Shown here in pieces: positions 22,934-46,364 of a stretch of DNA of 64,000 nt (the first letter of the stretch is position 1; each line of letters starts with the position of its first letter). A program made the translations under genes and the position numbers. The stretch is from Piromyces finnis finn (Eukaryota > Fungi > Neocallimastigomycota). The notes beneath the pieces are model-generated. The model was not told where the DNA came from and searched no databases. It saw only the letters and a list, made by a program, of their open reading frames with translations. The stretch lies in assembly GCA_002104945.1 (NCBI GenBank), contig MCFH01000046.1:124001-188000 (forward strand), given 5' to 3'.

Positions 22934-25900
22934 ATGAAAGTAAAAAATATAATAGCATTAGCAATCACATTAGCTTCAACAATATCAGGAGCTGTTATTA
23001 CACCATCTGGTTTAGAGATTCCAGAATCACTTATGGTATATCTAAGATGTCCAATTGGTGATAGTAAATGTAAAAATGGAAAAAGTAGTGCATGCGTTGC
23101 CCATTCTAACATTTGTCGTTATGATAATCCAAGTTCATTAGACAAATCACTTCGTAATGCTGGTTATGATATTGGAACATTAACAGCTGAAGAATATTGT
23201 AAAATCCACATTGAAGTATGTGATATGATTTATAAATATGATCCACCAGTTACTGACGATGACATATACAATTATGAAAAATATTTTACTTGTGATGAAG
23301 ATGATTATTTATGTAAATATAATCAAAATTCTAGCTGTCAAACTGTACTTAAGAAATGTCTTGAATCTTATCCAGAAGATGCCTGTCAAAAACTATCAAT
23401 AGTATGTGATAATATTGATAATGGTGTTATACCAATTTTTGATGATGAACCAGTTGTAGATGAACCAGTTGTTGATGAACCAGTTGTTGATGAACCAGTT
23501 GTAGATGAACCAGTTGTAGATGAACCAGTTGTTGATGAACCAGTTGTTGATGAACCAGTTGTAGATGAACCAGTTGTAGATGAACCAGTTGTAGATGAAC
23601 CAGTTGTAGATGAACCTGTTGTTGATGAACCTGTTGTTGATGAACCTGTTGTTGATGAACCTGTTGTTGATGAACCTGTTGTTGATGAACCTGTTGTTGA
23701 TGAACCTGTTGTTGATGAACCTGTTGTTGATGAACCAGTTGTTGATGAACCAGTTGTTGATGAACCAGTTGTTGATGAACCAGTTGTTGATGAACCTGTT
23801 GTTGATGAACCAGTTGTTGATGAACCAGTTGTAGATGAACCAGTTGTAGATGAACCAGTTGTAGATGAACCAGTTGTAGATGAACCAGTTGTTGATGAAC
23901 CAGTTGTAGATGAATCCGTTAATAATAATATTGAAATACCAAATACATCTATAAATAGTAATAACAACAAAGGGAAAATATATACCCCATCTGGTTTAGA
24001 AATACCAGATTCATTATTAGTATACTTAAATTGTCCAATTGGTGATAGTAAATGTAAAAATGGAAAAAGTAGTGCATGTATTACACATTCTAACATTTGT
24101 CGCTATGATAATCCAAGTTCATTAGACAAATCACTTCGTAATGCTGGTTATGATATTGGAACATTAACAGCTGAAGAATATTGTAAAATCCACATTGAAG
24201 TATGTGATATGATTTATAAATATGATCCACCAGTTACTGACGATGACATATACAATTATGAAAAATATTTTACTTGTGATGAAGATGATTATTTATGTAA
24301 ATATAATCAAAATTCTAGCTGTCAAACTGTACTTAAGAAATGTCTTGAATCTTATCCAGAAGATGCCTGTCAAAAACTATCAATAGTATGTGATAATATT
24401 GATAATGGTGTTATACCAATTTTTGATGATGAACCAGTTGTAGATGAACCAGTTGTTGATGAACCAGTTGTAGATGAACCTGTTGTTGATGAACCAGTTG
24501 TTGATGAACCAGTTGTTGATGAACCAGTTGTTGATGAACCAGTTGTTGATGAACCTGTTGTTGATGAACCAGTTGTAGATGAACCAGTTGTAGATGAACC
24601 AGTTGTAGATGAACCAGTTGTAGATGAACCAGTTGTAGATGAACCAGTTGTAGATGAACCAGTTGTAGATGAACCAGTTGTAGATGAACCAGTTGTTGAT
24701 GAACCAGTTGTTGATGAACCAGTTGTTGATGAACCAGTTGTTGATGAACCAGTTGTTGATGAACCTGTTGTTGATGAACCTGTTGTTGATGAACCTGTTG
24801 TTGATGAACCTGTTGTTGATGAACCTGTTGTTGATGAACCAGTTGTTGATGAACCAGTTGTTGATGAACCTGTTGTTGATGAACCTGTTGTTGATGAACC
24901 TGTTGTTGATGAACCTGTTGTTGATGAACCAGTTGTTGATGAACCTGTTGTTGATGAACCTGTTGTTGATGAACCAGTTGTTGATGAACCAGTTGTTGAT
25001 GAACCAGTTGTTGATGAACCAGTTGTAGATGAACCAGTTGTAGATGAACCAGTTGTTGATGAACCAGTTGTAGATGAATCCGTTAATAATAATATTGAAA
25101 TACCAAATACATCTATAAATAGTAATAACAACAAAGGGAAAATATATACCCCATCTGGTTTAGAAATACCAGATTCATTATTAGTATACTTAAATTGTCC
25201 AATTGGTGATAGTAAATGTAAAAATGGAAAAAGTAGTGCATGTATTACACATTCTAACATTTGTCGCTATGATAATCCAAGTTCATTAGACAAATCACTT
25301 CGTAATGCTGGTTATGATATTGGAACATTAACAGCTGAAGAATATTGTAAAATCCACATTGAAGTATGTGATATGATTTATAAATATGATCCACCAGTTA
25401 CTGACGATGACATATACAATTATGAAAAATATTTTACTTGTGATGAAGATGACTACATGTGTAAATTTAATCAAAACTCTAGTTGCCAAATAGTTCTTAA
25501 AAATTGTTGGAGTTCTTATTCTGATGATGATTGTAAAAAATTATCTACTGTGTGTGACAGCATTGATTCTGGTATAATTCCAAATTTTAAAGATATCGAA
25601 GTTAATGTTTCCAATGTTTCACAAGAAGTTACTTCAGAAGATACCAACAATGAAGAAACTGTAGAAAGTATTAAAACAGAAGATGGTTATGTTATTCCAG
25701 ATTCTCTTTTAACCTATTTAAACTGTCCAATTGGTAATAGCATTTGTAAGAACAGTAAAGGCAGTGCATGTACAAGTAGCTACAGTATTTGTGGTAGTAA
25801 CCCAGAAACTTTATCTCAAACATTTGAAAGTTTCAGAATTGAAACTGGAAATTTAACACCAGAGGAATACTGTAAAATTCACTATAGTGTCTGTAATATG

Positions 25901-26182
25901 ATTATTGATTATAATCCACCATTAACTGATGATTATATATATGATCTTGATAGATATTTAACATGTAATGATGGTGATTCTCTTTGTCAATTTGGCCAAG
26001 AATCTAGTTGTAATACAGTTCTTAGCTTATGTTGGGGTAATTATTCAGATAGTGATTGTAATAAATTAGCAAGTACTTGTGAAAAGATTTATTCAAAGAA
26101 AACTACTACAAAAATTAATGCATCAACAAAGAACAATAAAGTTCATACCATAAAAAAAACAATTGTTAAAAGAAGAAGTTAA
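22934..26182 (+). CDS. Secreted cysteine-rich protein CRP1 (1082 aa): signal peptide, four 12-Cys domains, two (DEPVV)n linkers, basic Thr/Lys tail; family not recognised
   Basis: Intronless ORF with signal peptide [20 protein letters not shown]. The domain TPSG..IP.SL..YL.CPIGD..C...SC..VL..C...C.KL...C occurs four times. The tail is [28 protein letters not shown]. Confidence 0.9.
23444..23908 (+). repeat. Coding minisatellite, 31 x 15 bp (GATGAACCWGTTGTW), encoding (DEPVV)31
   Basis: 465 bp divided by 15; the only variation is synonymous (CCA/CCT, GTA/GTT). Confidence 0.93.
24428..25072 (+). repeat. Coding minisatellite, 43 x 15 bp, encoding (DEPVV)43
   Basis: 645 bp divided by 15; same three synonymous unit variants as the first array. 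Confidence 0.93.
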
Positions 26183-27250
26183 AATAACTATATAAAAAAA
26201 ATTAATAATACCTATATTTTCTAAATTCTAATAAAACTTGATTTTAATTATTAAATATTAATATAAATGTTAAATCATATACAAAGTATAATAGAATAAT
26301 AAAAAATAAACATATATTTATTTTATTATGGGACCTATATCATTGTATAATTCATATATAAAGAATTATAAATATTCCAAAAAATATAGAAAAAAAATTG
26401 AAATTATAAATATAAATGTATTAAAGTTTTAATATATTTATTTTCAATCTTTTTATTATTATTAAGCTCTTGTCTCCATTAATTTTTAAGATTTTAATAA
26501 TTAATAAAATTTTGATATTGGTATTATTATCTAAAGATAATAAATTAAATACACCGTTTTAATATATAATAACAAATCAAAAAAAATATTTTTTTTTAAA
26601 AAAAATGAAAAGAAAAAGAAATTTTAATTACTAATCTTTTAAGAATTAAATAAAAGAAGCAAACCAATAAAGTAATGAATATGAATAAATATTGGTTTTC
26701 TAATTTAAAATTTTATGCTAAATTTCTTAAAATGAAAATTTTTCAATCCAATAAATTTTATTTTTATATATTAAAATAATATAGATTAAATATATTTACA
26801 ATAATATATTCAGATATTTAATATAATAAAGATAACAATATATTAAACAAAAACAAATAATAATTTTGTTTTTCAATTTACTATAAAACAACATAAATAT
26901 TATTGTAAGAAATTATTAATAAATAAGATTATTAAACCATAATAATAACAAATTTTAATTATACAAATAATAAATAATAATTGAAAAAAGTATTAATAAT
27001 TTTACTTACTATTACACCTAAAGAAAACTTTTGAATATAAAAAGGATAAAATGTATTCCTTTTTTTTTTTTAATTTTTAATAAAAAAAATATAAAAAAAA
27101 AAATAAAATTAAAAAAGTATTAAATAATAATTAATAATGTAAGTTACTGTTCCTGTTGATTTATTATTAAATTATACAAAATAAAAATATTAATAATCAA
27201 ATAAATTACTAAACAAGTATATAAATAACTATTATTATAGTGTTATAAAA

Positions 27251-27766
27251 ATGTTATCAAATTTAGTTTCTCTTGCTATTTCCTTTGCTTCTGTAGTTTC
27301 TGCAACTGTTTTAACAAGTAATGGTAATAAAATACCAAATTCATTGGTATCATATCTTGATTGTCCTATTGGAGATACACTTTGTAAGAATAATATGAAA
27401 AGTAAATGTCTTACTTCAGAAACATATAATATTTGTAAAAATGGTAATCCACTTATTTTGGATGAATTACTTGCTCAAAATAATGTTGACATTGAAAATT
27501 ATTCTCCTGTTGAGTTTTGTAAGATTCAAACACAAGTTTGTAATATGATTGAAGATTATAATCCTCCATTAACTAGAGATTATATTTTCGATGTTGAAAA
27601 TTATTTAACATGTGATGACGATGACGAAATGTGTAAATACAGTAAAAATTCCACTTGCAGACTAGTAGTAAAAATGTGTTGGGGTAATTATCCAAAAACA
27701 GCTTGTAAAAAGTTATCAAAAACTTGCGATGAAATTGGCTACGAAGAACCAAACGAAACAAATTAA
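27251..27766 (+). CDS. Secreted cysteine-rich protein CRP2 (171 aa), single 12-Cys domain
   Basis: Signal peptide MLSNLVSLAISFASVVSA. Domain reads IPNSLVSYLDCPIGDTLC...YNPPLT...YLTCDDDDEMC...CWGNYP..ACKKL..TC with 12 Cys. Confidence 0.88.
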   Translation: MLSNLVSLAISFASVVSATVLTSNGNKIPNSLVSYLDCPIGDTLCKNNMKSKCLTSETYNICKNGNPLILDELLAQNNVDIENYSPVEFCKIQTQVCNMIEDYNPPLTRDYIFDVENYLTCDDDDEMCKYSKNSTCRLVVKMCWGNYPKTACKKLSKTCDEIGYEEPNETN

Positions 27767-28481
27767 TATAAACATTTAGTTTTAATAGTAATTTAAAAAT
27801 TAAATTCTTTATATATATTATCATTATAAAAATTGTAAAAAAAAAAAAAAAAAAAGAAAGTTTAAAATTAAGCTTAATACCAATACCAATATTTTTTTTA
27901 ATTTTTTTTAAGAACTTGTATGAAGTATATATATTAGATAATTTCTATTAGTAAAATATTTAAAGTTTGTTAGAATAAATTTATAGTAGAAATTTATATT
28001 TTGTTTAAAATATTATTACCAAAGGAAAGTTATAAATATATATATATATAAATGTAATATAAGTAAAAAAAAATATAAAATGAGATATAAATAAAAAAGT
28101 ATTTTACTTTTAAAGTAAAAAAAATCATTTAATAAAGTTTATTAATAACTTATTAAGGAATAAAAAATGGGAATAAAAGTATTAAACAAATTTTAATATT
28201 AAAAAAATAAAGATATAAAAATACACTAAAGAAAACATTATAATTACGAATATATATAATTTCTGACTTTAAATGTTAAGAGATTACAATAATAATTAGC
28301 GAAAACATAACTAAAATTCAATAAATGCATGCAGGCATATATATTTTATATTAATATCTTTAATTCTATCTAAAAGAATTATAGATTAGTTTTTATATAA
28401 TTAATATTCTTTCGAAATTATTTTAATATTTTTAAATGTATTACAACATAAATATTTTATCAATATCTATAAAATATATAA

Positions 28482-29939
28482 CTAATAGTAATTGGGACGC
28501 TTTTTTAAATAAGTAGATGATTGTGTAAATGATATTTTGGATGAAGATGTTGTTTTTGATGAAAATAATTTAGAATAATATTTATTGGCTGTGAATGATC
28601 TTCTAGTTGTCGTTAATTTTTTAGTTATTGCTTGCCATCTAGTTATTGTTGGTTTTTTAGTTATTGTTTGTAATTTAGTTGTTAACTTTTTAGTTTTTAT
28701 TTGCCATTTAGATGTATTTAATGTTGTTTTTTTCGTAAAAGTATTAATTGATTCTTTTTCTGAAGTACTATTAAGCATACCACAAAATTCCTTAATAACA
28801 AAACAAAATTCAAGATAATTTAAATCTCCAATATCATAGTTAGATAGTAAATTAATATATTTAGTTTGATCTCGATTTTCACAATATAGAGAATATTCTT
28901 GAAGGCAACTTTTTGCTGCGGTTTCACCATTTTCTATATCAAAGTATTTTAAAAGAGGTTGTGGGACTTCAGCCCCTGATGGTGTATATAATAAATTATA
29001 TGATTGATATAACTGATCAATTTCATTACATTTTGATAATAACTTGTTACATGCATCATTTGGATATTTACTTTCACACATACTATAAGCCATTCTACAA
29101 CTAGAGCGCTTACCATAATAACAAGATTGAGTATTTATTTCACATTCATAAATTTCTAAATCATATATATATCTACTATTAAATGAGTTATTATATTCCA
29201 TTATATATTCACACGCTTTTTTATGTTTATCACAATAATCATTAGGTTCTAAATAATCAATTTCATCATTGTTATTTATATATTCTATTAATTCACTTTG
29301 TCTTTCTGGATTACAAATAGTATAATGATCGAGGCATTTTTTTGTTTCTTCCCTTTTACAAGATATGTCTCCAAGTAAACATCCAAAATATTGCGTAAGT
29401 GGTTTTGGCAATCTAGTATTGTCAGGTGTAAATATTGCTACCTCATCATTATATTGTTTATATATATTATCACATGTTTCTGATAAATTTCTACAATCTT
29501 TTACCGGATATTTACCCCAGCATTTATCAAGTACTTTCTTACATCCATTATAATTACCGTATTGACATATCGAATCATTATATCCACAACTTAAATATTG
29601 ATCCAAATCATAAACATCATTATCACTTATTTCTGGAACATAAATATTAATATATTGACATGATTCATTGATCAATTTACAGAAATCAGATGGAGGAAAA
29701 TTACCTATATCAAAATCCTTAGATATTTTTTCAATCTGAATATCTGGGCTTTCACAATAGCTAATATATTCATAGTGACAAGAACGCCCGTTTCCATTAA
29801 TACATACAGTATTACCGGTTTGGCATGAAAAATAATGCAAAAGAGATTTTGGAACCTCTTTCCCCGATGGTAATATGATATTTGCTAATGAAGTCCTATT
29901 AAGCAAAATCACATATGGAATTATATTTTTTATCTTCAT
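28482..29939 (-). CDS. Secreted cysteine-rich protein CRP3 (485 aa): two full domains, a degenerate half-domain, and a basic Thr/Lys/Ser-rich tail
   Basis: Signal-like N-terminus MKIKNIIPYVILLNRTSLA. Domains start LPSGKEVPKSLL, TPDNTRLPKPL and TPSGAEVPQPLL. The tail reads KKTTLNTSKWQIKTKKLTTKLQTITKKPTITRWQAITKK. Confidence 0.85.
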   Translation of the reverse strand: MKIKNIIPYVILLNRTSLANIILPSGKEVPKSLLHYFSCQTGNTVCINGNGRSCHYEYISYCESPDIQIEKISKDFDIGNFPPSDFCKLINESCQYINIYVPEISDNDVYDLDQYLSCGYNDSICQYGNYNGCKKVLDKCWGKYPVKDCRNLSETCDNIYKQYNDEVAIFTPDNTRLPKPLTQYFGCLLGDISCKREETKKCLDHYTICNPERQSELIEYINNNDEIDYLEPNDYCDKHKKACEYIMEYNNSFNSRYIYDLEIYECEINTQSCYYGKRSSCRMAYSMCESKYPNDACNKLLSKCNEIDQLYQSYNLLYTPSGAEVPQPLLKYFDIENGETAAKSCLQEYSLYCENRDQTKYINLLSNYDIGDLNYLEFCFVIKEFCGMLNSTSEKESINTFTKKTTLNTSKWQIKTKKLTTKLQTITKKPTITRWQAITKKLTTTRRSFTANKYYSKLFSSKTTSSSKISFTQSSTYLKKRPNYY

Positions 29940-30100
29940 TTTTTCTACTAATATATCACTAAAGAAATAGAAAAAAAAAATATAAAATATATATATTATT
30001 TTTTATTTAATGTAGTATAAATTTATTAATTATTGGCATTTATAAACTTAATTTATTATATATATTTTTTTTTTAAATGAGCGAAAATTAAATTTAAATT

Positions 30101-30164
30101 TAAATTATTATCTTTATAATTATAATTTTAAATAAATTATTATCTTTATAATTATAATTTTAAA
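30101..30164. repeat. Perfect 32-bp tandem duplication upstream of CRP3
   Basis: TAAATTATTATCTTTATAATTATAATTTTAAA at 30101-30132 and again at 30133-30164. Confidence 0.8.
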
Positions 30165-30600
30165 ATTTAACATTAAAATGTCTCAATAACCCTATCATTC
30201 TATTCAAATTAAACTTTTATTTTTTTTTTATATATTTTTTTGTTATAATTAAATACTTGAATAATTAATTATTTTTTTTTTATTTTTATTTTACTTTATT
30301 TTTTTTTTGTTTTATACACCTAAATAATTATGTGTACAATTATAATTTAAATAATATTATATTATTCAATCATTATTAATTAAAAATAAATATATGTATA
30401 TATTTTTTAATAGTAGTATTATTTTTATTAAATATTATTAATAATTATATATATATAATTACATTGCGATGGTATTTTTTAAATAATTTTTATAAAATAT
30501 ATTTATATATAAATATACAAACAAGATTTTATTTTATTATATTATTATTATTATCTTCTTGACGAGATAATATTATACTTTTTTTTTTTTGTTATACGAA

Positions 30601-31140
30601 TTAGAGAATTTCTTTGACAGCTTCCTTAATAACATCTATTTCAGCAAGTTTATTGCATACATTTCCTAATTTTTGACAAGCTTTATTTGGATAATTTCCC
30701 CAACATCTTTTAAGTACAGATCCACAACTAACATTCTTACCATGGATACACATAGTATCAGAATCATCACAATCTAAGTATTTCTCGATATTATAAATAT
30801 ATTCGATTGTTAAATGAGGATCATAATTTTCGATCATTCCACAAACTTCTGTATGTATTTTACAAAATTTTGTTGGAGTTAAATCACCAATGTCGATATC
30901 TTTATCATAAAAAATATCATATAGTGAATCTGGGTCATTAGAGTTACAAATTTTAATAATATCAGATTCATTACATGATTCGACTTTTTCTTTTTTACAA
31001 ACAATATCACCAATTTGACAATCTAAATAAGTTAACAGTGAAGAAGGAATAATAATACCAGATGGTGTTTTGACTGTTAATAAAGCTGAAACAGCAGTGG
31101 CACAGCTAATAGCAATAGTAGCTAAATTTAAAACTCTCAT
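30601..31140 (-). CDS. Secreted cysteine-rich protein CRP4 (179 aa), single 12-Cys domain
   Basis: Signal peptide MRVLNLATIAISCATAVSA. Domain reads TPSGIIIPSSLLTYLDCQIGDIVC...CWGNYPNKACQKLGNVC. It shares the CX8C spacing at C3-C4 with CRP2. Confidence 0.88.
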   Translation of the reverse strand: MRVLNLATIAISCATAVSALLTVKTPSGIIIPSSLLTYLDCQIGDIVCKKEKVESCNESDIIKICNSNDPDSLYDIFYDKDIDIGDLTPTKFCKIHTEVCGMIENYDPHLTIEYIYNIEKYLDCDDSDTMCIHGKNVSCGSVLKRCWGNYPNKACQKLGNVCNKLAEIDVIKEAVKEIL

Positions 31141-32733
31141 TTTTTCTGAAAAAAAAAAAAAAAAGTAAAAAAAAGGGTTTAATTATTATAATTTTGAATA
31201 TATATTAATTTTTTTAAATATATTTACATTGAATTTCTTTTTCTCTTTTTAGGTTTTATTACAATGCAATGTATATTTTTTAATTACAAAAATAATTAAA
31301 AAAGTGAATGAAAAAAATAAGAAAAAAAAAGAAAAAATTTCTCGTTTTATATAAACATAATTTAAATAAAGAGTAAACAATAATTATATTTAAAAATATA
31401 TTTTGTTGAAAAAGAATTAGGGTGTTACAAAATTACAAAAAAAAAATATTTAATGAATTATAAACAAATTATAGATGAATTGTTGTATGCTTATAATATT
31501 ATTTAATTTAATTTTTTGAAAATTAAATTAAATATTTTGTGTAATCTATTTTCATTTTAACTAGATATTACTTAAATTTATTTTTTTTTAATATTCATTT
31601 TCTATATATATTAAAATTTAATATATTTACATTCATAATTTAGTTATAAATATTTTGAAAACAATTATATTTATAATATAATTATTGATAACTCATTCTA
31701 ATATCAATAATCAATAATATTAAGTTTTTTTAATGATATTTGGGTTAAAATAGATTCATATTTATAATTTTCATTTTTGTTGAATATAAACAGTTACAAA
31801 TAAAATAATAAGATAAAAAAAAAATTTAAATAATTTTTAAATAATCATTTATATACCTTTTTTATTAAAAAAAAATAAATAATAATTAAATTAATAAATT
31901 GTTAAGCTTAAACATACATAAATAAAGCTATAATTCTTACACATAATTAAATTATTTTTACTTTTATTTTTAAATTAACTTTTATTTTTCACTTTATTAA
32001 AATATTGATGATTTATATTAGTGATCACAAAATTAGAATGTTAAAAAAAAGAAAATTTTTTTAATGTTTTGCAACCGTGGAGAACCATCATTTTATTTTT
32101 CTAGTTTAATTCTATTTGCTACATATAAGAATAAAAAAACCTCTAATTTCCACCCAAAGGTTCCAATCAGAGACTCCTATACATATAATTATAATTAAAC
32201 TAGTTCGATTCTAAATTTACTAATATTTGATCTTCATAATAATATTTAATAAATTTTAGAATTATATTTATTATTAAATTTTGATGAATTAAAATTTCTT
32301 TATTTTGATTGGTCAAAATGAAATATTCAAAATTATAAAATTTTGTATATTTACCATATATAAAATAAAAATAAAATTTCATATTGATATAGGTAAATAA
32401 TGGTTATTAATTTAAAAGGATATTTTATAAAGAAAAAAATAAAATGTTTATATGTTTTAAATGATATGTGTATTAGTAATGTGAAAACTATATTTTTATT
32501 GATATATATAAATGAATCAATCACTTCATATTTTCAACTTTTTTTCTATTATAATTCAAAATAAATAAATTTAGCCTTAATTTTTCTTTTTTTTATTTTA
32601 ATCTTAAATAATATACAAAATTATTGAATATGAAATTAAAATAATTAAGACATAGAATGTCATTTTTTTTCTTTAAAAAGAGTATAAATACGTTAAAATA
32701 TACTAATTGAAATACTTAATATATACACATCAA

Positions 32734-35700
32734 TTATATATTATTTATAGCACCAAGTGAATATAAAAGATTTCTTCTTGAAAAATGAACTGTATATATT
32801 GGTGTTTTTTTAGTAGGATAGGTTCCTAGTAAATCATTTTTACTATTATCACAAGAAAATACATAGATTATTATTAATAATTTAAATATATAAAAAAATT
32901 CTATGTAATCAATTAAACAATTTTAATTTTACAATTTTTTTAATATTAATACTTACAGATTATTTTTAAGTTTTTCTTTGCTTGTTAAAATTGATTTATG
33001 GATAGTATTATTCAATTGAGTAGGAGAAGGATTATCAATATCCATGGCATTTGGATCATTATTTGATATTAAATTAGACGATTCCTGTTCTATTATATCT
33101 AATGCATTAATGTCATCCTTTTTAACATCCCAAATTCTTACAGTATTATCAGAAGAACCAGATGCAAGAATATTACCTTCTTGACTGAATGATAATGAAT
33201 TTACAGTATTTTCATGACCATTTAAACTCTTTATTTTTCTTCCTGAACCTATATCCCATATATTAATGATTTTATCTTCACCTATAATAGTTAATGAATT
33301 AATATTATTTGTTGTACATTTTTTTATTAATAGTATTTATATTTTGATTAATATTTAAATAGTTTATTTATTTATTTATATTTAAATATAATTATATCAA
33401 ATTTTATAAAACAAATTTTTAATTACCACTAGTTGCTAAAGTTTTCCCATCTGGTGTAATTGCTAATGCATAAATAGGTCCAAGATGTCCTTTAAATATT
33501 CTAATACAAGTACCTTTTTGAACATCCCATAGTCTTGCTGTACAATCACTACCACCAGTAACAATATAATTTGAATTTGGATGAAATTTTACTGACTATT
33601 TATTAATAGATGTATAAATATAAATGTATTGAGATTTATTTTAATTTTTATTTCTTTTTAGAAAATTAGGTGAATTAAATCACTTACATCAACATCCGAA
33701 AAATGTCCAACAAAAATTCTTAAAGGATATATATGATCACAGCTCCATAATCTTGCAGTTCTATCATGAGATGCGGTTGCAAAATAAAACCCTTCCGGTG
33801 AAAAGTCAACGTCCCATACTGGATAATTATGTCCTTTATAGCAAACAACATTTGAAAATGTATCCAAACTCCATAGACGTGCTATTTTATAATTATTATA
33901 ATTAAATATTAAATAAAATAAAAAATAACTTTAAATATTAATCTATTTACTTGTTTTATCTTCAGAAACAGAAACCAAGTATTTGTTATCTGGACTAAAC
34001 GAAGTACTATAAATTGGACCTGAATGTGCAATTAGTTTTTTACATTGTGAACCTACTGGTTCTCTAAAGCGATCTAAATCTAAATAATATATAATAATTT
34101 TAATAATTTTTTAATTAAAACTGAATATTTATATTGAATATTTAAAGGTATATATGGTATATATATATTATAAATTTTACTAGGAATATATACTATCAAC
34201 ATTTCCATTAATATTTCTTGGCTTTGTTATCCCTCTTAAATTCTTTCCAGTAATAGACCATATACGAATAAAGGAATCAGAAAAACCTCCGCATATCATA
34301 GTTTCATCATTATTAATACTAAGACAATTTAAACTATGATTTAATTTGATTATATAATATTTAATATATTCATTGTAATTAAAATTAGAATATTTAATAT
34401 TAATATGAATTAGAAATATTTAAAATAAATATTTTAATTACCCATGATGTGTATTATGAAAAGTATAGCAACAAATTGATGGAAGCTTATCATTATCTAG
34501 TTTTGCTCTTTTACTTATATCCTTTAAATTTTTAATATCTGTAGAAATATCGATTAATTTTCTATTTATAATTAAAAAATAAAATAAAATAAAAAAAATG
34601 AAAAATTAATAATTATATATATTTATCACAATTATTTATACTATTATTTTTCTTCATTTATTTATTTACACCATTTTATTTTTTATACCTTACTGGAAGT
34701 GGTACTTGTTCTTTTGGTAAAGGATCTTCATTTAATTTTTCTTGCATTCCTTTAAATATTTCTAGTAACTGTTCATTATTTTCATTTTTCTATTAATTAT
34801 ATTAATTATTTTAATATACAATTAAATAAAATTATTAAATTTATACATTAATACAGTTATATATAAATGACCGTTATATAAATTGATTAATATAAATGTT
34901 GTTAAATACAAAATTAATTTAAATCATTGATTTAAATTTATTATTTATTAAAATATCTAATTTCATCTGTTAATATTTATTTCGATCAATATATAAACAA
35001 TAATTATATAATTCATACTTCATCTTTAATCCTTCGTTCAATTTCTTCAATTTCAAATAAATCATATGGTCTTTTTCCCAAATGAATTTCTTGTTTATTA
35101 AAAGCCTCAATTTGTGAATCCTGATGTCCAATTATACCAACACCACCATCTATATCTGATTGTTGTAATGCCTTTGGTGATACTAGAATACTTAGATACT
35201 GATTTGTAATTTGTAATAAGATAGCATATGAACTATTTTGTAAATATGCTAAAAATAAAGAATATGAAGCTGAACTTAACTTTACTAAATATTTATTTCT
35301 TAAGAATGTTTGTGCTAGAATATTTTCTTTTACATGCATTGGATCTGATAGACTTGATAAACGTTGTATATCTTGAATATGTTGTTCTCTATGGTCAATA
35401 GAATACTTTTCCATAAATTGTTTTGCTTTAATTATAGATTTAATGTGGAATAAATATTGAATGGTTATTGAATTATTATGATTTTAAATTTTAGATATTG
35501 AAAAAATAAAATAAGTTAATTTTATTAATATTTAAATATTTAATTTTATATTAAAAATTGAAAAAAAAAAAAAAAAGAATTAATTGGTAAATGCCTAATG
35601 GATATTAAAAAAAAATTTCTAAATTAGAATACCTCTTTGAGTTTTTCCTGAAGATACTAGATTTAAATATGAATATATAAATATTGGATATAATAAAGAA

Positions 35701-36765
35701 CGAAGTTCAAACTATATAGTAAAAATAATAATTAAGATATTAAATATATGTCATCAAAATAAAAATATTTTTTTCTAAAAATCTTTTCATAATGTACTGT
35801 ACTTTTAATAATTCAAAAAAATATTTTTATTGAAATTCAATAAAATATAATTAAGTTCTTCATAATAGGAAAATTATTATTAAGCACAATTTACAATATC
35901 TTTATTTGATTATTTATACGATATTTACTCTATACATATCAATAGAACCTTCAATCCATGATCTTAATTTGGAATACCCTTCCTCATATAAATTATCATC
36001 TTTTTCAGTACTTGATGTATTTGCAATTATATAATTATTTGGATTATCAGTTGTTTCTTTTGGTGGTTCATGATTTATTGAAGGAGTTGATTCATTGCTT
36101 TTTAAATCTTCCATGAATGCTTGCTCTGCATTTTTGTAACCTTTTTTCCTTAAGTATTTTAATATAGTTTGTTCAACATCCTCACTTTCTGAACCACTAT
36201 CTGAATTAACTGTAGAATCAACTTGAACTGAATCTGTTGTTTGAATTGTAGATTGTTGAAGAATTTGATTTTCTCCATTAATTTGATTTTTATCTTTGTT
36301 TTGATCCTGTTTTTGTATTTGATTTAAATCATTCTTATTCTGATTTTGTGTTTGATTTGAATTTTGTGTTTGATCCTGATTTTGATTCAAATTTTGATTT
36401 TTGATTTGAGTTTGAGGTTGATTTTGGGTTTGAGTTTGAGCTTGAATTGAATTTTGGGTTTGAATTTGGGTTTGAGTTTGAATTTGAGCTTCAGTTTGAG
36501 CTTGAATTGAATTTTGGGTTTGAGTTTGAGTTTGGGTTTGAGTTTGAGTTTCACTTTGAGTTTGGGTTTGGGTTTGGGTTTGAGTTTGAGTTTGGATTTG
36601 AGTTTGAATTTGAATTTGAGTTTGAGTTTCACTTTGAGTTTGATTTAGATTGTCATTTGGAATATCAGATGTTTTTTGCGGTGAAATTGATTGAGGTTGT
36701 GAACTTGATGTTGATGATGATATTGGTGAAGTTATTTGTGAAATTTGAGATTTGTTATCCGACAT
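32734..36765 (-). CDS. TAF5: TFIID/SAGA subunit TAF5 (Q/T-rich N-terminus, LisH, NTD2, WD40 repeats); multi-exon
   Basis: Motifs include [72 protein letters not shown] and GHFSDVD. The C-terminus [29 protein letters not shown] ends at 32734. Confidence 0.92.
36420..36640 (-). repeat. Coding hexamer-based repeat, (QT)n/QIQT, in the TAF5 N-terminal extension
   Basis: ACTCAA/ACCCAA units in the first exon; boundaries are approximate. Confidence 0.75.
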
Positions 36766-39700
36766 TTTTAAATTGTTAAAAATATATAATTATTAAAGTA
36801 TTAAAATTGAAAATTAAATATTATAAAATATTGAAATTATATATAAATAATCATTTAATAGATCTTGGTATATATTTATATATGTTTATTTATTATTTTT
36901 TTTTAGTTGTAAAAAATAAAATTTATAATGTAATTTAAAAAAAGTAAAGTATTTGCAGTATATTTAAAATTATTAAATTATAAATTATGATTAAATAATT
37001 ATAATTTAATTGGGAAAGGTGGATTACAATATATAATTAATGATTTATAATTTAATAATATTTGCCACATTATTAGAATTTTTAAACAAACTATGTAATT
37101 TATGATATATGATATTATTTCAATTATTGTAATGAATTTGAATGAATTATCATAATCAATTACAGTTTTTTTTATTAAAAAATATAAAATTTTCTTTTAG
37201 ATTTTGAATTTTTGAGGCTGTAGCATATTAATGTTACAATAATTTATTTATATTTATATTTTTAGTTAATTATCTATAAACATATTTATTTGTATTTAAA
37301 TTATATGTTTTTATTATTTATATTTCCTTTAATTAAACACATATTTATTCAAAAAATTTTTAATATTACCTATATAATTATTTTATTATATTTTTACTTG
37401 TATGCAAAAAAAAATATTTTGTTAATAATATAGTAATATCTTTTATTATAAAATTCATAAATTTATTTGAATAGAAAGTGTATTATTATATTTATTATAT
37501 TTTATAATTAATAATTCCTTTATACCAAGAAATCAATTATTTTCTTGAAACTAAAAAATGTTGACAATACATTATAATTATTACAATCTTTTATTTTATA
37601 TTTTATTTTATTTTATTTTATTTTTTTTTTTTTGAAAATTTCGATATATAATATATAAAGATTCTATATTCAGTTTTTTATATAAGTATTTTATTTTTCT
37701 ACATTAATATTATATGCTTTCAATATATTCACATTTTTATATAAGGAAAATGTGGGTGATACAAGAGTTTATTATAAAAACTTGGTAAATAACTTTTTTA
37801 ATTTTTTTTGAATTAAAAAAATTTATTTTAATATATCAACTTTTCCTTAATATATTAAATTCTTGCTATTTATAAATTTTTGATAAAATTCTTTCTTCTA
37901 AAACGTTTTATAATCTAATATATAAATGATACCAGTTTACAAAATTTATATAAATATAATGTATAATATATATTGGGAACATTTTAATAGTATAATGTAG
38001 TATATGCATTTTTAATACCAATTCTTAATAAAATTATAAAAACCTTTTCATTTTTTGTTTATTTTAATACATAAAATTCTATAATATTATAATTGGAAAT
38101 ATAATTTATTTTTATTAATACATATATAAACAATATTTAACTTTTTTATAATTTTTTATCATTTATTATTTTATACTTTTTAATTTCTTGTGACGATTTA
38201 TATATATTTTATATATATAATTTTAATCTAATTATAAGATTATTAGTTGTCTTTGCTTTAATAGTAATTTAAGGTTTAATTAACATCACCTATTTATTCA
38301 AGCATTGTCTTTTAACATATTTTTTTATATACTTTAATTATTAATGAATTAATAATTAAAATATTTATAATAATTGCTTTTTTTTTTATTTATAAGATAT
38401 AATTATTAGTTATATATAGTACTCATATGAGTTAACATAATTTATTGTAACAATATAAGCAATAAAGAAATAATGTTTATAATAGCATTATTCAAAATAT
38501 AGTAAAAAAAAACTTTTCTTAATCATATATTGTCTTTTTTTACAATCTTACAAAAAATATTGGTAATGTATTACATTGTATACATTTTCATAATTTTTAG
38601 AATTTCTGTATTAAATGATATTTCGATTTTATATATTTTTTGACCTTTTTATATTCATTTTTTACATATATTATTAAATTTTCAAGTAATGAAAAAAGTT
38701 TAAAATAGAAAAAGAATGTGATAATTAAAAATTATTATATTCCGTTTTTTTTATGAAAAAATATAATTTGAATATAAATATAAATGATTTTTCCATAAAA
38801 ATTTTTTATATGATAAAAAATATTTTAAAGTTAGTTATATAAAACTTAATATTATAACCAAGAAAAAAAAAAGAATTATAAATATAAATTTTACTAGTCT
38901 CTTAATAATAATTGTTTAATAGTATATAAAAATTTAAAGATAATTTTTTTACTATTATATTTATTTTTCCAAGAAAGAAAAAAGTAAGTATTTCTTATTT
39001 TCATTTAATAATCTATAAAATTTTTGATATTATACACAAATTTTTGATATAAATAACAATAATAATTATTTAAAATAAAATGTTATAAAGTACATTACAT
39101 TTTTTTTTTTTTTATAAAAGGCAACATTAACATTCAAAAAAATTATATAACTATTAGTATTAATATTATAAATCATGAATATAATAAATATAAATATAAG
39201 AAAGTAAATCAATTATTAAAATATTCTAATTAAAAGTTATATATTTAATATAAAATCCTTCTATAATAAAGAATTAATAACAATATTTAAAAGAAAAGGC
39301 AACATTAACAAATAGAAATAATTTGCAAATAAAAATATTATATAATCAATATATTTATAAAATACAAGAAATTATAAGAATAAAATTAATTAAAAAAAGG
39401 AAAATCATAACAAATCCTCACATTTTTTAACAATAAAGCAGTCAATAATATAAAATTAAAAACTGCATAAAAATATAAACACTAATTATAAAAAATTTTT
39501 TACTTTATAAAATTAATAATAATAGTATTATTATTTTTAAATATTTAAAATTGTGAATAATAATTTATATTCAATATATACTTTAATATATTCATAATTT
39601 ATATTATTTTAACATATAGATATAAAATAATATATAATAATAAAATATTAAATAAATAAAAAAAAATTTGAAAAGTATTATTAAAAAAATCAAATTAAAA

Positions 39701-40307
39701 AAATTTATTATAGTTTTAATTTTGAATTTTAAAACTATTATTTTTTAACTTTTCATTTATAAAAAAAAATTATATAGTATCTTCTTTTCTATTGCTTTTT
39801 ATTTCTTTATTTCCCTGTTTTAAATCTCATTAAAACAGAAGTTTTTTTTTATTGATCCATTTAATAGCCAATTTATTGTCTTTTTTTTCCAAATTTATTA
39901 CTTTTTTATTTATTTTTTTTAAAAAAAAGAAAAAAATAGATTTTATTAAAACTTTAAAAAAAACTTGTAAAGGAAATAGTAAATGTATTGTATTGTATAT
40001 TATATATTTATAAAGTAACTAATTTTTACTTCTTCTCATTTTCTATATATTTCTTCCTCATTTTTATTCTTATTTATTTTGTTAAAAAGAAAAATTTTTT
40101 TTTTCTTTTTAATTATAATTTTCTTTATTTCTTTAAAAAGAATATAGAATGAAAAAATAATTCACTATCTTACATATATGATCTATTTTTACTTCCATAT
40201 TATTATAATATTTTAAATAAGTACTAAAATTATTAGTTCAAATAAAGCCTCATAAAAACTTCATTCATTCATTCATTATATTCTCAATTAACCTAATTTA
40301 TCTAAAG

Positions 40308-40940
40308 ATGGAATCAAATATTTCAAAATTTCCATCAAATTATAATCAAATATTATTTGAAACAATTAATTTATGTGGGAATGAAGAAGAAAATGAATTT
40401 AGAAGGATAAACTTTATTAGCCATTACAATAAATTAAAATCAAATCAAAACAATACGAATTCAAAATTATTAAAAAAGTCATATACAATTAAAAAAGCTC
40501 AAAGTAAAAACAGTAAAGATATTGTTTCCATAAACACAGTTGTAGATATGTTAAATAGTAGTATTTGTAAAGCTAATAAAGAAAAAAATAATATACCACT
40601 TAATATACCTCCAAAAACAAAATTTGATATAAATAATAATGATAAATGCATTAATTTTGATTTTATAGATAAAATACAGGAATATAAAAACGAAACAAAG
40701 GACATTAATAAATCTATAACTAAATTTTCAAAAATTGATAATGAAGATTTAAATGATGATATTCAAGATGATATTAGACAGTATTTAAATGGCAACAATA
40801 ATAAAATAAATGAAAAAGATACAGGTATAAAAAATAAAAAAAATATTAAGAAAAAGAAAAAGAAAATGATTAAAATGGAGCTTCCAACTAATGGCTTCGA
40901 TATTGAATTTCCAATTATTAGAAATCCAAATTCTTTTGTA

Positions 40941-40999
<59 letters not shown>

Positions 41000-41126
41000 A
41001 AGTTATACCATATTAACTAAAAGAAAGCAAAAGCAAAAACTCATTGAAAATGTTGAATTGTTCAATAAAAATTTAATGAATGATAATGATACAAATAATT
41101 TTTTAAATATCTTAGAAATACCAAAA

Positions 41127-41157
<31 letters not shown>

Positions 41158-42724
41158 ATAATAATAAAAATGAATTGCCCATTATTAGTAAAGTTATTCT
41201 TAAAGAAGCTAAAAAAATAATTAATAATGATAATAATATCGATATAACTAATGATAATGAATTGACAGATGCAAATGGTACATCAAATCCTTCTAATTCT
41301 AATAATAGGATTTTACGTAGTCAGTCAAATTCTAATAACAATAATATAAGTTTTAATCAATTCAACAAGAATATAGACAAAAATAGAAATAATAATTTCA
41401 GTAATGATAATGAAAATAATAGACGTGATAGAGGTAATATTAATGATAATAATGAAAATAATAATGCTCCAAAACTAAAAGTAACAAATAAAGAAATAAG
41501 AAAAATACGTCGTGCTTTACGTAGAGCTACTGTAGATTGTTCAGAACGTGGTTTATTTCAAGCTTCTAAATGGTAAATATTTGGAAAATTTAGATTAATT
41601 AATTTCGAATGATTAAAAAATTATAGAATATAATTCATTATTAAACTTTTTAAAAGAAAAAAGATGTTAACAATAAATAATAATATAATTTAAATTTGTA
41701 CAGGGCATCAGAACAATTAAATAGTATAACAAAAGCATCCGAAAGTCTAAATCAATATAGAGTATATAAAAGTCAAAAGAAAAGAAAAAGAAATAAAAAT
41801 AAGGGCCAATCAATGGATGAAAATAAAATTGGTATCGATATAATGGATGAGGATGAGTCTAGTAGTGATGATGAATGCGATATTTATTATTATTCAGATA
41901 GTGATAATGAAGATCAAATTATAAGCAATGACATTAATATGAATTCTATATTTAATAGTACCCCATATAATAAAGTCTTAAACTCTTCATCAACAACAAT
42001 GAAAAATGATGTTAAGTCAAAAAAATCAAGTAAACAAAAATATCCACATAATCCAAAGATGACTTATAAAGAGTATGATAAATTTTTGTTTGCAAGAACT
42101 TTATTTGATATTCGCGAATTTGATCGTGCATCATATACTTTAAATTCATTAACGCATCCGAAATGTATATTTTTAAGACTATATTCAAAATTTATGGTAA
42201 TATCTAAAGAAAAATATTTTTAACCAAACAATATTATAAAATGAAATTATATATATTCAGATATATTTATATAACTAAATATTAATAAAAATGTATAACA
42301 TAAATAATAATTGTTTTAAAAAAAAACTATATTAAAGGCTGGTGAAAAAAGAAAAGATGAAGAAATTGTCGATATTGTTGGATTAAATGAGAATACTTAT
42401 TATATGAATAAGGATATAGTTGAAATAGAAACAGATTTAATAGAGGGCATAAAAAATAACCCAGATGATGGCTTTTTATTTTATTTGTAAGCTATAAAGT
42501 TTATAAATAAACATGATAAATGAAATTTAAACATTTATTACACATCTTAAATTCGTTTTAATTAATTTAATAAAAATATCATTTAGGTATGGAGTAATAT
42601 GTGTTAAAAAGAATCAAAAGAAAAAGGCAATACAACTTTTAACAAGATCGGTAAAATTATACCCATATAACTGGAGTGCATGGCTAGAATTAGCATCTTG
42701 TTTAATCACTCAAGAATTAGTAAT

Positions 42725-42823
<99 letters not shown>

Positions 42824-44365
42824 CATCATCATAATTATTCAATACAAAAGTATTTTTTAATAAATTATTAAAATCATATAATTAATTTTTGTAATTAGAT
42901 TACCAGTGTATTACCAGAAATCGAAGATAATTTAATGTCTAGATTCTTTATGACTCATTTAGCATTGGAGTATCAAAACAATAATGAAAACTTCGAAAAT
43001 TATATTAAACCTTGTATAGAAATATTTGATGATAGTAATTATATTCGTTCTCAACTGGCATTATCAAATTATCACACCAGAGGTTAATAAAATTTTAAAT
43101 AAATATATTTTTTAAATATTCATTTTAATTTAATATATTTATAAAAAAGCATTGCCATTATATTATATTATTATATTATAACACATTATATTATATGAAT
43201 AATGACAAATTAATATGAATAATAAAATATTTTTTATTTTTAATAATAATAGATTTTGAAGAATCTGAACAATATTTTGATAAGATTATCAAAAAGGATC
43301 CATATACCCTAGAAAACATGGATATTTTCTCACATGTGTTATATGTAACAGAAAAAGCAACCAAATTAAGTTATTTAGCTCATAATTGTTGTATGATTGA
43401 TAAATATCGTCAAGAAACGTGTTGTATTATTGGTAATTATTATTCTTTACGTGGTGAACATGAAAAAGCAGTATTGTATTTCCAACGAGCATTAAAACTT
43501 AATAAAAATTATCTTTCAGCATGGACATTAATGGGTCATGAATATATTGAACTAAAAAATACTCAGGCAGCAATAGAGGCTTATCGAAAAGCCATTGGTA
43601 TGTATCTATAGTTTTTTAAAATAAATATGTTATTTTTTCCATCGCTATTATATTATAAAGAAAGTATATTCATTAATAATTATAAATATTTTTTAACCTT
43701 TTTATTTAAAGATTTAAGTCAAAGAGATTATAGAGCATGGTATGGTTTAGGTCAAATTTATGAAGTATTAAGAATGCCTTATTATTCACTTTATTATTAT
43801 CAACAAGCGGCATCATTGAGGTAAATACAATATCAATAATAACTTGAAGGAATTAATATTTATATATACAATTAATTATTATATATATAATAGGCCATAC
43901 GATTCTAGAATGTGGGTTGCATTAGCCCAATGCTATGACTATATGGATCATAAAATAGAAGCAGTTAAATGCTATAAGCGTGCTTTAATAGGAGGTGACT
44001 CAGGACCAATTGTTCTTATTAAATTAGCCAATCTTTATGCAAAACTTGGAAATAACGATACAGCAGCATATTATTATCGCTTTAGTTTGTTGGAATATAA
44101 AAAATTAAATAACGTAAGTTTTCCTAGCATTTTTTAAATTTATTGAAAAGTATTTTTAATCATAAGTTAATAATATATAATATTTATTAAATAAAATTGA
44201 AAAAAAAAAAAAATAGATTGAAGATCCAAATTATCAAGAAGGATGTATATTTATGGCGAACTATTATAAACGTAAAAAGAATTATCAAAATGCAGAAAAA
44301 TATTTACAAGATGTAAGAACCAAAAATAATTTGCATTTTTATTACATTATAATACAACAATCTAC

Positions 44366-44399
<34 letters not shown>

Positions 44400-44502
44400 A
44401 ACAATATTATTAATTGTTTTAAATATTTTATAGGTATTACATACGGAAGAAGGGAAAAGTTTAGTGAAAGAATTAAAAAGTCTACAAATGGCAGAAGCTT
44501 AA
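40308..44502 (+). CDS. CDC23: Anaphase-promoting complex subunit CDC23/APC8 (TPR protein) with a long Asn/Lys-rich N-terminal extension; multi-exon
   Basis: Motifs include [19 protein letters not shown]|[66 protein letters not shown] and [14 protein letters not shown]. The last exon ends ...KSLQMAEA* at 44502. The start codon is uncertain. Confidence 0.92.
42728..42823. repeat. (AAT)32 microsatellite followed by (CAT)3 inside a CDC23 intron
   Basis: Read directly; it follows the donor after ...ITQEL and precedes the ITSVLPE exon. Confidence 0.88.
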
Positions 44503-45043
44503 TAATCTTTTTGATTTTTTTTTTAAATGTATATTATAAATTAAACTATCACCCTTTTTATTTTATTTTTAATTTTATTATTATTTTTTATTTATTTTCT
44601 ATTTGTATCAAATTCATTTTCAGGCACTATTAATAACATGATATAATATATATATATATATATTAATATTTAACATTTCTATTATTTAAATATAATATAT
44701 AACAGTTTTCCCCTAAAATATATAAATATTTATTTTACTATTTATTTATTATCTTCATTTCTCATTATTTTCGTTTCTTCATATATCATTAACATACATA
44801 ACTCAATAAGCATATATAATGTAATAAATATTTATATTATACAATGACAAATAATACAATAATTACAACAAAAAAATAAAAAATAAAAATTCAATATAAA
44901 TAATCAAATACTTATATATATATTAAAAATATTTATATGATGAATGTTAAAATATATGTTTCTTTTATTTTTTTTTTTCTGCTGCAATTATAGAATAACC
45001 AGAGATATGGTTTAGTATTATAAAAATAAATATTTTTATTTAT

Positions 45044-46364
45044 TTAAAATATTTTTCGTAATATTCTTCTGTAAAGACGAATATTTCTAATAGTAGATCT
45101 TTTTACAGGAAATTTCTTTGGTAAAATGTGTCTTATTCTTTTTGGTATATGATCTAGTATAAACTTTTCTAATATACTACCAATAGGAAAGGTATTTTTT
45201 TTTATATATTTTTTGTATTCATTATTAGAACGTTGTTGAATTTTCCTTAATACATGACTTCTTTTACGTTGTTTTTTATATATCAATTGATCAATTGATA
45301 ATTTTTTTTGCTTTCTTCTTTTTCTTGATGATAATTGTTGTTTTTCTTCTGCCTGTTTTAGATTATATTTTTTTTCGTTTTTTGATTCCGACAGTTGTGA
45401 TTTTTTAGTTTGTAACTGTTTTTTAATTTCTGTAAAAAAGTTAAGCATAGTAAACTTATTAAATTTAGTATTTGGAATATGAAAAATCCCTTTAAAATAT
45501 TTCAATGTTTTTGAAATAAATCCTATCTTATCTTTTGTAATATATGGTATCATTAGTACTACTATGAAATTTATTGTTAATATTAGTTTAATTATTAATA
45601 TAATTTTATAATAAATCATTTTTTTTTTATAAATTACCTTGTTTATTTTTTTTAATAGCATAATCGCCAATAACAGTATCTTTAGTAGCTATATATTCTA
45701 GATGACTTTTTGGACAAATATTTAGATCAGTCTTATATTCTTTATTTTTTTTATTAATTATACTACCAATAGGTATATATAAATATGATATTGGAAAAGA
45801 TTCACTGATACTATTTTCAATCTTTGAACAAATATCCATCAACTTTTGGCAATCATTTATTGATTGAAAACTCCAACACTTATTAAGAACATAATGACAA
45901 CTTGACACTTGACTAGAAATACACATAGTATCACCAAACTCACATTTAAAATATCTGTCGTAGTCATAAATGTAATCATCAGTTAACGGTGGATCATAAT
46001 TCATAATCATATCACATATTTCAATAATTAATTGACAATAGTTTTCTAATGACAAATTATCAATATATTTTACTTCTTTATTATCACTATATTGGCAAAC
46101 CTCTGAATTTTTTATACATAACTTTATATTTTCATTTTTACAATTTATATTTCCAATTGGGCAAGACAAATATTTTAATAGTGAATCTGGGATAACTTTT
46201 CCAGACTTTGTTTTTATTTTTAATAAATTATATAATGGTCTTATACTACTCTCATCTCTATCAACCGAGTCTAAAATTTTACCATCACTTGACACTTGAT
46301 AAGCTCTTGATACTTCAAAAGCTAAATTAACTATAAATAGAATTACTATATAATACATATTCAT
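45044..46364 (-). CDS. Secreted cysteine-rich protein CRP5: one 12-Cys domain plus a probable second exon encoding a highly basic tail (predicted 414 aa)
   Basis: Signal peptide MNMYYIVILFIVNLAFEVSRA and domain IKTKSGKVIPDSLLKYLSCPIGNINC...CQKLMDIC. A donor AAG|GTAATT at 45637 and acceptor CATAG at 45562 define a 76-nt phase-1 intron that joins the ORF in frame to 45044-45561. The unspliced alternative is a 245-aa protein ending at 45627. Confidence 0.75.

Follow-up and report, generated by a model that had tools for sequence, protein, structure and literature searches.

Few organisms break down plant fiber as well as anaerobic gut fungi do, and much of the extracellular machinery of these fungi is without known domains. 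The assembly and attachment of their cellulosomes are still unsettled. We analyzed a 64-kb stretch of the Piromyces finnis genome (assembly GCA_002104945.1, contig MCFH01000046.1, positions 124,001 to 188,000), referred to below as the window, which has a GC content of about 20%. Five genes in this window, named g1 to g5, code for secreted-looking proteins that share a domain with 12 cysteines, and several described systems resemble this domain in part.

The CFEM domain (PF05730), found for example in the Candida hemophores Csa2 and Rbt5, is also fungal, extracellular, helical and disulfide-rich. Proteins carry it singly or repeatedly, in many cases on a Ser/Thr-rich stalk, and both soluble and wall-anchored forms exist. 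Solved CFEM structures have a helical-basket fold, and CFEM binds heme by way of a conserved Asp. However, the CFEM consensus has 8 Cys in about 66 residues with a different spacing, whereas the domain described here has 12 Cys in two six-Cys modules. The Frizzled cysteine-rich domain (CRD, PF01392) is extracellular, mainly helical and about 120 amino acids long with 10 Cys. It differs in cysteine count and spacing, and our domain is internally duplicated and has no hidden Markov model (HMM) match to it. Twin CXnC hairpins, such as the alpha-hairpinins (CX3C) and CHCH proteins (CX9C), are helix-loop-helix structures held by two disulfide rungs that link Cys pairs lying on one face of each helix, an arrangement that we also predict here. 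The pattern in P. finnis is CX6-8C...CX6C with an additional N-terminal C1-X6-C2 ring, and two such modules would be packed together in a secreted fungal protein. We regard this resemblance as one of design and not of membership, and we see no sequence relation.

Two scaffolding systems are also relevant. The ScaA modules (Haitjema et al. 2017, as described in PMC8262932) are lineage-specific, non-catalytic, repeated and Cys-containing, and the anaerobic fungi secrete the proteins that carry them. In the ScaA fragment published for P. finnis (PMC8262932, Table S1), the repeats are short and of the type GYY...C...C. They are unlike the 12-Cys domain, and we rejected a relation to ScaA. The only protein longer than 754 amino acids returned by our profile search was a spurious wasp protein (P0026), although we did not check that the searched library contains ScaA. 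Bacterial scaffoldins combine cohesin repeats with CBM3, SLH or dockerin modules and thus pair a repeated module with a cellulose anchor, a wall anchor or a dockerin. Cohesins are beta-sandwiches without disulfides, whereas our domain is predicted to be helical and disulfide-rich. The parallel would be one of analogy only.

A two-module domain in five genes

The domain is about 145 amino acids long, and its 12 Cys follow the spacing 6-7-6(-8)-19..27-6-23-6-7-6-8-6 in every full copy. We compared its two halves, termed modules A and B, by profile-profile alignment. hhalign aligned half 1 with half 2 at a probability of 96.6% (E 4.9e-10) over 51 columns with all six Cys in register, and half 1 carries a 19-residue insertion relative to half 2. 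Both modules also occur separately. Module A (profile positions ~2-88) is found alone as tandem repeats in the relatives P0029-P0033, P0015 and P0016, and P0028, P0034 and P0036 each have a lone module B (positions ~82-143) at their N-terminal end. At the level of sequence profiles, these comparisons show that the domain consists of two homologous, separable modules of about 50-85 residues in tandem. The genes and their modules, with predicted signal peptides, are as follows.

22934-26182, plus strand: g1, an open reading frame (ORF) of 1082 amino acids with a signal peptide, four A+B domains and a Lys/Thr-rich C-terminal tail
22997-23431, 23981-24415, 25145-25579 and 25673-26104, plus strand: domains 1 to 4 of g1 (HMM matches, independent E-values 1e-61 to 1e-64)
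23444-23908 and 24428-25072, plus strand: spacers of g1, the perfect arrays (DEPVV)31 and (DEPVV)43 that follow domains 1 and 2
27251-27766, plus strand: g2, an ORF of 171 amino acids with a signal peptide and one A+B domain (27311-27751)
28482-29939, minus strand: g3, an ORF of 485 amino acids with a signal peptide, 2.5 domains and a basic Ser/Thr/Lys-rich tail
29448-29876 (A+B), 29004-29432 (A+B) and 28740-28988 (A only, without C1 and C2), minus strand: modules of g3
30601-31140, minus strand: g4, an ORF of 179 amino acids with a signal peptide and one A+B domain (30631-31071)
45627-46364, minus strand: g5, an ORF of 245 amino acids with a signal peptide, a 27-residue spacer and one A+B domain (45804-46214)

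These genes had been picked out in an original prediction made from the sequence of the window. That prediction placed five ORFs at starts 22934 (+), 27251 (+), 29939 (-), 31140 (-) and 46364 (-), all of which are present. Its copy numbers (1, 1, 1, 2.5 and 4) agree with our counts of 4, 1, 2.5, 1 and 1 for g1 to g5, a total of 9.5. It also described two related halves with a conserved 12-Cys scaffold, and both features hold in every full copy once the third spacing is allowed to vary from 6 to 8 residues and the half 1 loop from 19 to 27; the shorter value comes from g5, in which the A loop has 19 residues versus 27. The description of a single domain of about 140 residues needs to be revised. 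The A+B pair does recur as a unit, but the A-only and B-only relatives make it divisible. A scan of the six-frame translation of the whole window with the domain HMM matched g1 to g5 alone.

Copies from different genes are 29-51% identical and retain every Cys. In the half copy of g3, the only cysteines are C3-C6 of half 1. Within g1, copies 1-3 share 86-96% identity, and the near identity of the domain-array-spacer units indicates that their expansion was recent or that they have been homogenized. The domain tree was mostly unresolved. It identifies g1 copies 1-3 as a recent in-gene expansion and joins copy 4 weakly (81/89) to the third domain of the ortholog in Anaeromyces robustus. The domains are acidic (pI 4.4-4.9). 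Positions conserved outside the cysteines include the N-terminal string TPSG..IP.SLL.YL, a CPIGD ring and a 12-residue string at the A-B junction.

We assessed secretion with a Kyte-Doolittle hydrophobicity heuristic. In all five proteins, the N-terminus has a hydrophobic core resembling that of a signal peptide (1.6-3.1 over 10 residues), in line with the predicted signal peptides. By the same heuristic, none of the five has a later 19-residue stretch above 1.05 or a hydrophobic C-terminus, and we saw no sign of a transmembrane segment or glycosylphosphatidylinositol (GPI) anchor in g1-g5. The 3' end of g5 is uncertain. A database gene model (P0018, 414 amino acids) splices g5 into an ORF at 45044-45670 on the minus strand through a short intron. 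This extension is very Lys/Arg-rich and has no Pfam match, and it may be an over-extended gene prediction.

Patterns of cysteine loss provided clues to the disulfides. In 21 distinct domain instances, C1 and C2 are both replaced while C3-C6 are kept, and in one instance, the third domain of P0016, both C4 and C5 are replaced. These paired losses point to 1-2, 3-6 and 4-5 as the probable disulfides of each module. We modeled the g4 domain with AlphaFold2 from a 10-sequence alignment. The model is all-helical, with nine helices, a mean predicted local distance difference test score (pLDDT) of 91.5, no residue below 70 and a predicted template modeling score (pTM) of 0.77. Long helices carry the CX6C pairs, in keeping with helical hairpins that are held together by two rungs of disulfides. 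Taking the paired losses together with the helix positions in the model, we predict that each module is a helical hairpin with two inter-helix disulfides (C3-C6 and C4-C5), preceded by a small C1-C2 ring.

Searches for related families and folds

We searched for the domain among known families. Pfam left it unmatched in the g1-g5 proteins and reported no CBM1, CBM10, CBM18, CFEM, hydrophobin or LysM domain in them. The only Pfam matches in these proteins, Extensin_1 and ASFV_J13L, are caused by the (DEPVV)n arrays of g1. The claims that the cysteine spacing falls outside these six fungal patterns and that no catalytic domain is present both agree with this result. When 32 diverse domain copies were searched at E<=10, no Pfam family appeared in more than three of them, and PF05730 (CFEM), PF01392 (Fz), CBM_1, CBM_10 (PF02013) and Chitin_bind_1 each matched 0/32. 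A profile search of PDB sequences gave nothing below E 0.2.

Structural searches with the domain model gave a similar picture. The best Foldseek match in the PDB had E 0.76 and a TM-score of at most 0.25, with globins making up most of the matches, and VIA-align found no fold match among the matches listed. No CFEM chain and no Frizzled, NPC1 or folate-receptor chain was among the listed matches of either tool, both of which can miss helical folds. The fold search of Swiss-Prot models and searches of the ESM Atlas by features and by shape produced no match to the domain. In the AlphaFold DB clusters we found five whole-domain matches. One is g3 itself, one agrees with P0012 from Piromyces sp. 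E2 both in its length and in the residues matched, and all are uncharacterized except for a Piromyces sp. E2 paralog that carries the automatic name 'FZ domain-containing'. The ortholog in A. robustus (P0004) is automatically named 'CFEM domain-containing' in UniRef. The two names contradict each other and neither is reproduced by Pfam, so we treat them as cysteine-driven profile noise. We rejected membership in the CFEM or Frizzled families, given that neither matched any of the 32 copies in Pfam or appeared among the fold matches listed.

Our literature search did not find a prior description of the domain, and Pfam has none. The original prediction had called the family unrecognized and had named a match to a characterized family as evidence against it; no Pfam, PDB-sequence, Foldseek or VIA-align match was obtained. 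We conclude that the domain matched no described family or fold in these searches and apparently represents a new domain family and a new fold. The proteins themselves are already public as hypothetical proteins, and their kind is familiar: they belong with the cysteine-rich, non-catalytic modules that modular proteins of fungi carry outside the cell.

Five further AlphaFold DB proteins (A0A1Y1V965, A0A1Y2BHT7, A0A1Y3NUS5, A0A1Y1VEY4 and A0A1Y2EP58; 220-701 amino acids, uncharacterized) match module B alone. Residues 95-142 of the model align with their last ~50 residues (Foldseek probability 0.92-1.00, root-mean-square deviation 1.5-3.1, identity 21-31%). B-like modules may thus cap other proteins, possibly enzymes.

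We examined how widely the family is distributed by a profile search of 1.84 billion representative proteins at E<=0.001, which returned 33 clusters. The named clusters come from A. robustus or Piromyces sp. E2, besides two weak, partial animal matches. The remainder derive from metagenome or transcriptome assemblies, and the contigs that we fetched have a GC content of 15-31%. We treat both animal matches as spurious. The wasp protein P0026 matches in 21 weak stretches, but its repeat is of another type and has no more than a string resembling IP.S..L.C.G..C in common with the domain, and the nematode (Anisakis) protein P0035 matches 28 columns. As far as can be seen from these searches, the family is restricted to anaerobic fungi, as its predicted lineage specificity would require.

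Fusion partners and candidate functions

Relatives of the window genes carry the domain in combination with known targeting modules. Pfam identified three CBM_1 modules beside the domain in P0021, and a Chitin_bind_1 (CBM18) module behind a Thr/Lys stalk in P0023 and in the A-only protein P0032. P0028 and P0034 have a separate C-terminal pair of CBM_10 fungal dockerins. Exact copies of the CBM1 fusion are present on 23 contigs, which come from several samples, and two contigs, each from a different sample, carry the dockerin fusion. This recurrence indicates that neither fusion is an assembly chimera. We take the chitin targeted by the CBM18 relatives to be that of the fungus's own wall. Through the fusions, the domain is connected to targeting modules for cellulose (3 x CBM1), chitin (CBM18) and the cellulosome (2 x dockerin), suggesting that its role is that of payload rather than anchor. 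We regard these fusions as the strongest functional clue. They also limit one earlier statement. The lack of an anchor applies to g1-g5 but not to the family overall, which includes anchored relatives.

We propose that the domain is a putative non-catalytic binding or bridging module of the matrix between the fungal wall, the cellulosome and plant fiber, a proposal to which we give about an even chance. In this model, a rigid domain that binds a partner or ligand would be the payload delivered by CBM1, CBM18 or dockerins. The window proteins would carry one to four copies of it as beads on acidic (DEPVV)31/43 or basic Thr/Lys linkers, and such beading on long linkers would make them multivalent bridging or adhesive components. 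The putative extracellular binding, adhesion or coat module of the original prediction gains support from the three kinds of fusion. Several observations weigh against our proposal. An all-helical fold is unusual among carbohydrate-binding modules. Apart from Cys, the best-conserved residues are for the most part hydrophobic or aromatic, and their role may be purely structural. The g1-g5 proteins have no anchor of any kind and could be free soluble factors instead of bridges, and their secretion is predicted from the hydrophobicity heuristic. Finally, we looked up relatives of g1-g5 in rumen metaproteome supplements (the largest of them in part), using the identifiers or accessions of P0004, P0012 and P0023 and the locus-tag number of P0003, and found no match. 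The sole identifier match in these supplements was to an unrelated bacterial entry.

A small, secreted, helical and disulfide-rich domain is the typical profile of extracellular lipid or heme carriers, and the 12-Cys domain, being secreted-looking, all-alpha, disulfide-rich and about 145 amino acids long, conforms to it. It could carry a small hydrophobic ligand (a lipid, a sterol-like or phenolic compound, or heme) in the manner of nonspecific lipid transfer proteins, elicitins, saposins, insect odorant-binding proteins, CFEM hemophores or Frizzled/NPC1-type domains. The soluble g2 and g4 proteins and the CBM18-anchored forms would then relay the ligand, as in the Candida CFEM relay; the coexistence of free and wall-anchored members and the CFEM and FZ auto-names are in keeping with this idea. 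We nevertheless consider it unlikely, as the domain has no sequence or structural match to any carrier family, the two auto-names disagree and find no echo in the 32 Pfam-searched copies, and fusions to CBM1 and dockerins would be unexpected in a nutrient relay. The chitin-anchored relatives bear as well on a structural role in the wall or in the coat of zoospore cysts, where the domains would act as inert disulfide-stabilized blocks and the repeats as spacers, comparable to the Dictyostelium spore-coat proteins. The extensin-like (DEPVV)n arrays, the Thr/Lys-rich tails and the acidity of the domains would all suit a coat. Such a role is quite unlikely in our view. The relatives with CBM1 or dockerins suggest a destination other than the wall of the fungus itself, the single-domain members (171-179 amino acids) have no wall-linking feature, and the even number of Cys in every full domain leaves none free for cross-linking. 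A last possibility of this kind, that the domain is a CFEM or Frizzled CRD member so divergent that sequence and fold searches overlooked it, strikes us as highly improbable. It draws on the same auto-names and on the tendency of VIA-align and Foldseek to miss helical folds. Set against these are the failure of any family to match consistently at E<=10, PF05730 and PF01392 included, the different number and spacing of cysteines, an internal A/B duplication with no counterpart in either family and the lack of a CFEM or Frizzled structure among the matches listed.

Delivery to the wall, the cellulosome and the substrate by the three kinds of fusion would also make sense for a protective factor that blocks proteases, chitinases or lysozymes of the gut community or plant defense compounds. 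A serpin with dockerins is known in the Piromyces cellulosome, and plant trypsin inhibitors (alpha-hairpinins) are among the helical hairpins stapled by two disulfides. The prospects of this wholly inferential idea are slim, however. The domain resembles no inhibitor family, and we identified no feature resembling a reactive loop. We give a similarly small chance to the domain being a cohesin-like receptor for dockerins. The family would in that case make up a second scaffoldin system, in which some members are anchored to cellulose (CBM1) or to the wall (CBM18), some serve as adaptors (dockerin) and some are free, an array of architectures that parallels the primary, anchoring and adaptor scaffoldins of bacteria and includes one to four copies on long linkers. 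A conserved fungal cohesin domain 'remains elusive', and an anti-ScaA antibody did not label native cellulosomes (PMC8262932), which we count in its favor. However, the published dockerin partner ScaA has a GYY...C...C repeat unrelated to the domain, the family is small (33 clusters) compared to the dockerin proteins, of which the literature reports hundreds in each genome, and our single-sequence model of the dockerin fusion P0028 was unusable (pLDDT 43). Among the alternatives this one would matter most if true, and it would supply the elusive conserved fungal 'cohesin'.

Whichever function applies, the window defines a conserved domain family that has a confident structural model and no known relatives and is tied to the degradation machinery by its fusions. 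The single-domain proteins g2 and g4 are small and would be tractable in a search for a new binding specificity, such as one for a polysaccharide, a dockerin, a small ligand or a hostile enzyme. The compact disulfide-stapled scaffold is also a possible engineering part. Should the domain prove inert or merely structural, it would be one more lineage-specific cysteine-rich family. With its fusions to CBMs and dockerins, the family is a more promising target than average.

Transcription and genomic context

We mapped assembled contigs from four runs labeled as RNA (X1-X4), drawn from three studies of the same organism, to g2, g3 and g4. RNA contigs cover g2 from 27241 to 27815/27824 in X1 and X3 and partially in X2 and X4, and a single contig spans g3 from 28495 to 29948. 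For g4, contigs were seen in all four runs, with coverage of 30596-31137, and spliced contigs identified an intron upstream of the start codon.

31146-31227, minus strand: intron in the 5' untranslated region of g4 (82 nucleotides, GT..AG), spliced in RNA contigs of X1, X2 and X3

Exon 1 of g4 covers at least 31228-31283, and in the same three runs position 31228 is joined to the exon that starts 5 nucleotides before the ATG. The depth was zero in all four runs over the intergenic segment 30234-30527, which argues against DNA carry-over. The family is thus transcribed and spliced, in at least three members (g2, g3 and g4). The original prediction had named a lack of expression as evidence against it, and the contigs of these three genes answer that point. 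Some RNA contigs of very high depth (with word depths reaching ~2,860) overlap the window by no more than 21-25 nucleotides, at 28065-28085 and 31311-31339. The apparent joint 28085>31319 is false and probably reflects a short AT-rich string that is common to an abundant unrelated transcript. Run X3 has T where the window has C at 27507, 27759 and 29294 (in g2 and g3), whereas X1, X2 and X4 match the window. Strain differences are the probable cause.

The family is bracketed by two Hsp104/ClpB paralogs, and fragments of three other genes were recognized in the window.

18436-21225, minus strand: Hsp104/ClpB paralog (Pfam)
48025-50880, plus strand: Hsp104/ClpB paralog (Pfam)
35013-35414, minus strand: TFIID/TAF5 NTD2 fragment, an exon of an intron-containing gene
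41696-42223, plus strand: APC8/Cdc23 fragment, an exon of an intron-containing gene
60502-61254, minus strand: DEAD-box helicase fragment, an exon of an intron-containing gene

The two ends of the cluster are mirror images, with Hsp104 (-) beside g1 (+) on the left and g5 (-) beside Hsp104 (+) on the right. This arrangement suggests an old inverted duplication of a pair consisting of Hsp104 and a 12-Cys gene. The two intergenic regions adjacent to Hsp104 contain no canonical heat-shock element triplet, and the matches they share are of low complexity only.

Parts of this arrangement are conserved in other anaerobic fungi. In A. robustus, an Hsp104/ClpB gene is followed by the three-domain gene P0004 in divergent orientation and then by a single-domain gene of 220 amino acids, which parallels Hsp104-g1-g2. 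Two HSP70 genes lie just past this arrangement. Orthologs of g4 are 65% and 58% identical to it. In Piromyces sp. E2, a TAF5-like gene is near the g4 ortholog, as TAF5 is near g4 in the window, and next comes an unannotated ORF whose 2.5 domains are arranged as in g3. The E2 contig (L001, KZ150919.1) is more than half N. Its g4 ortholog at 9983-10587 is split over two frames by a frameshift or an assembly error, and as a result the annotated protein P0003 skips C1-C2. The g3-like ORF occupies 12184-13668 (495 codons) and is annotated merely as a gene of 87 amino acids. Synteny in A. robustus and Piromyces sp. E2 indicates that the cluster predates the split of these genera. Since the 2.5-domain layout is common to g3 and the E2 ORF, the half copy is a conserved feature and not a product of decay.

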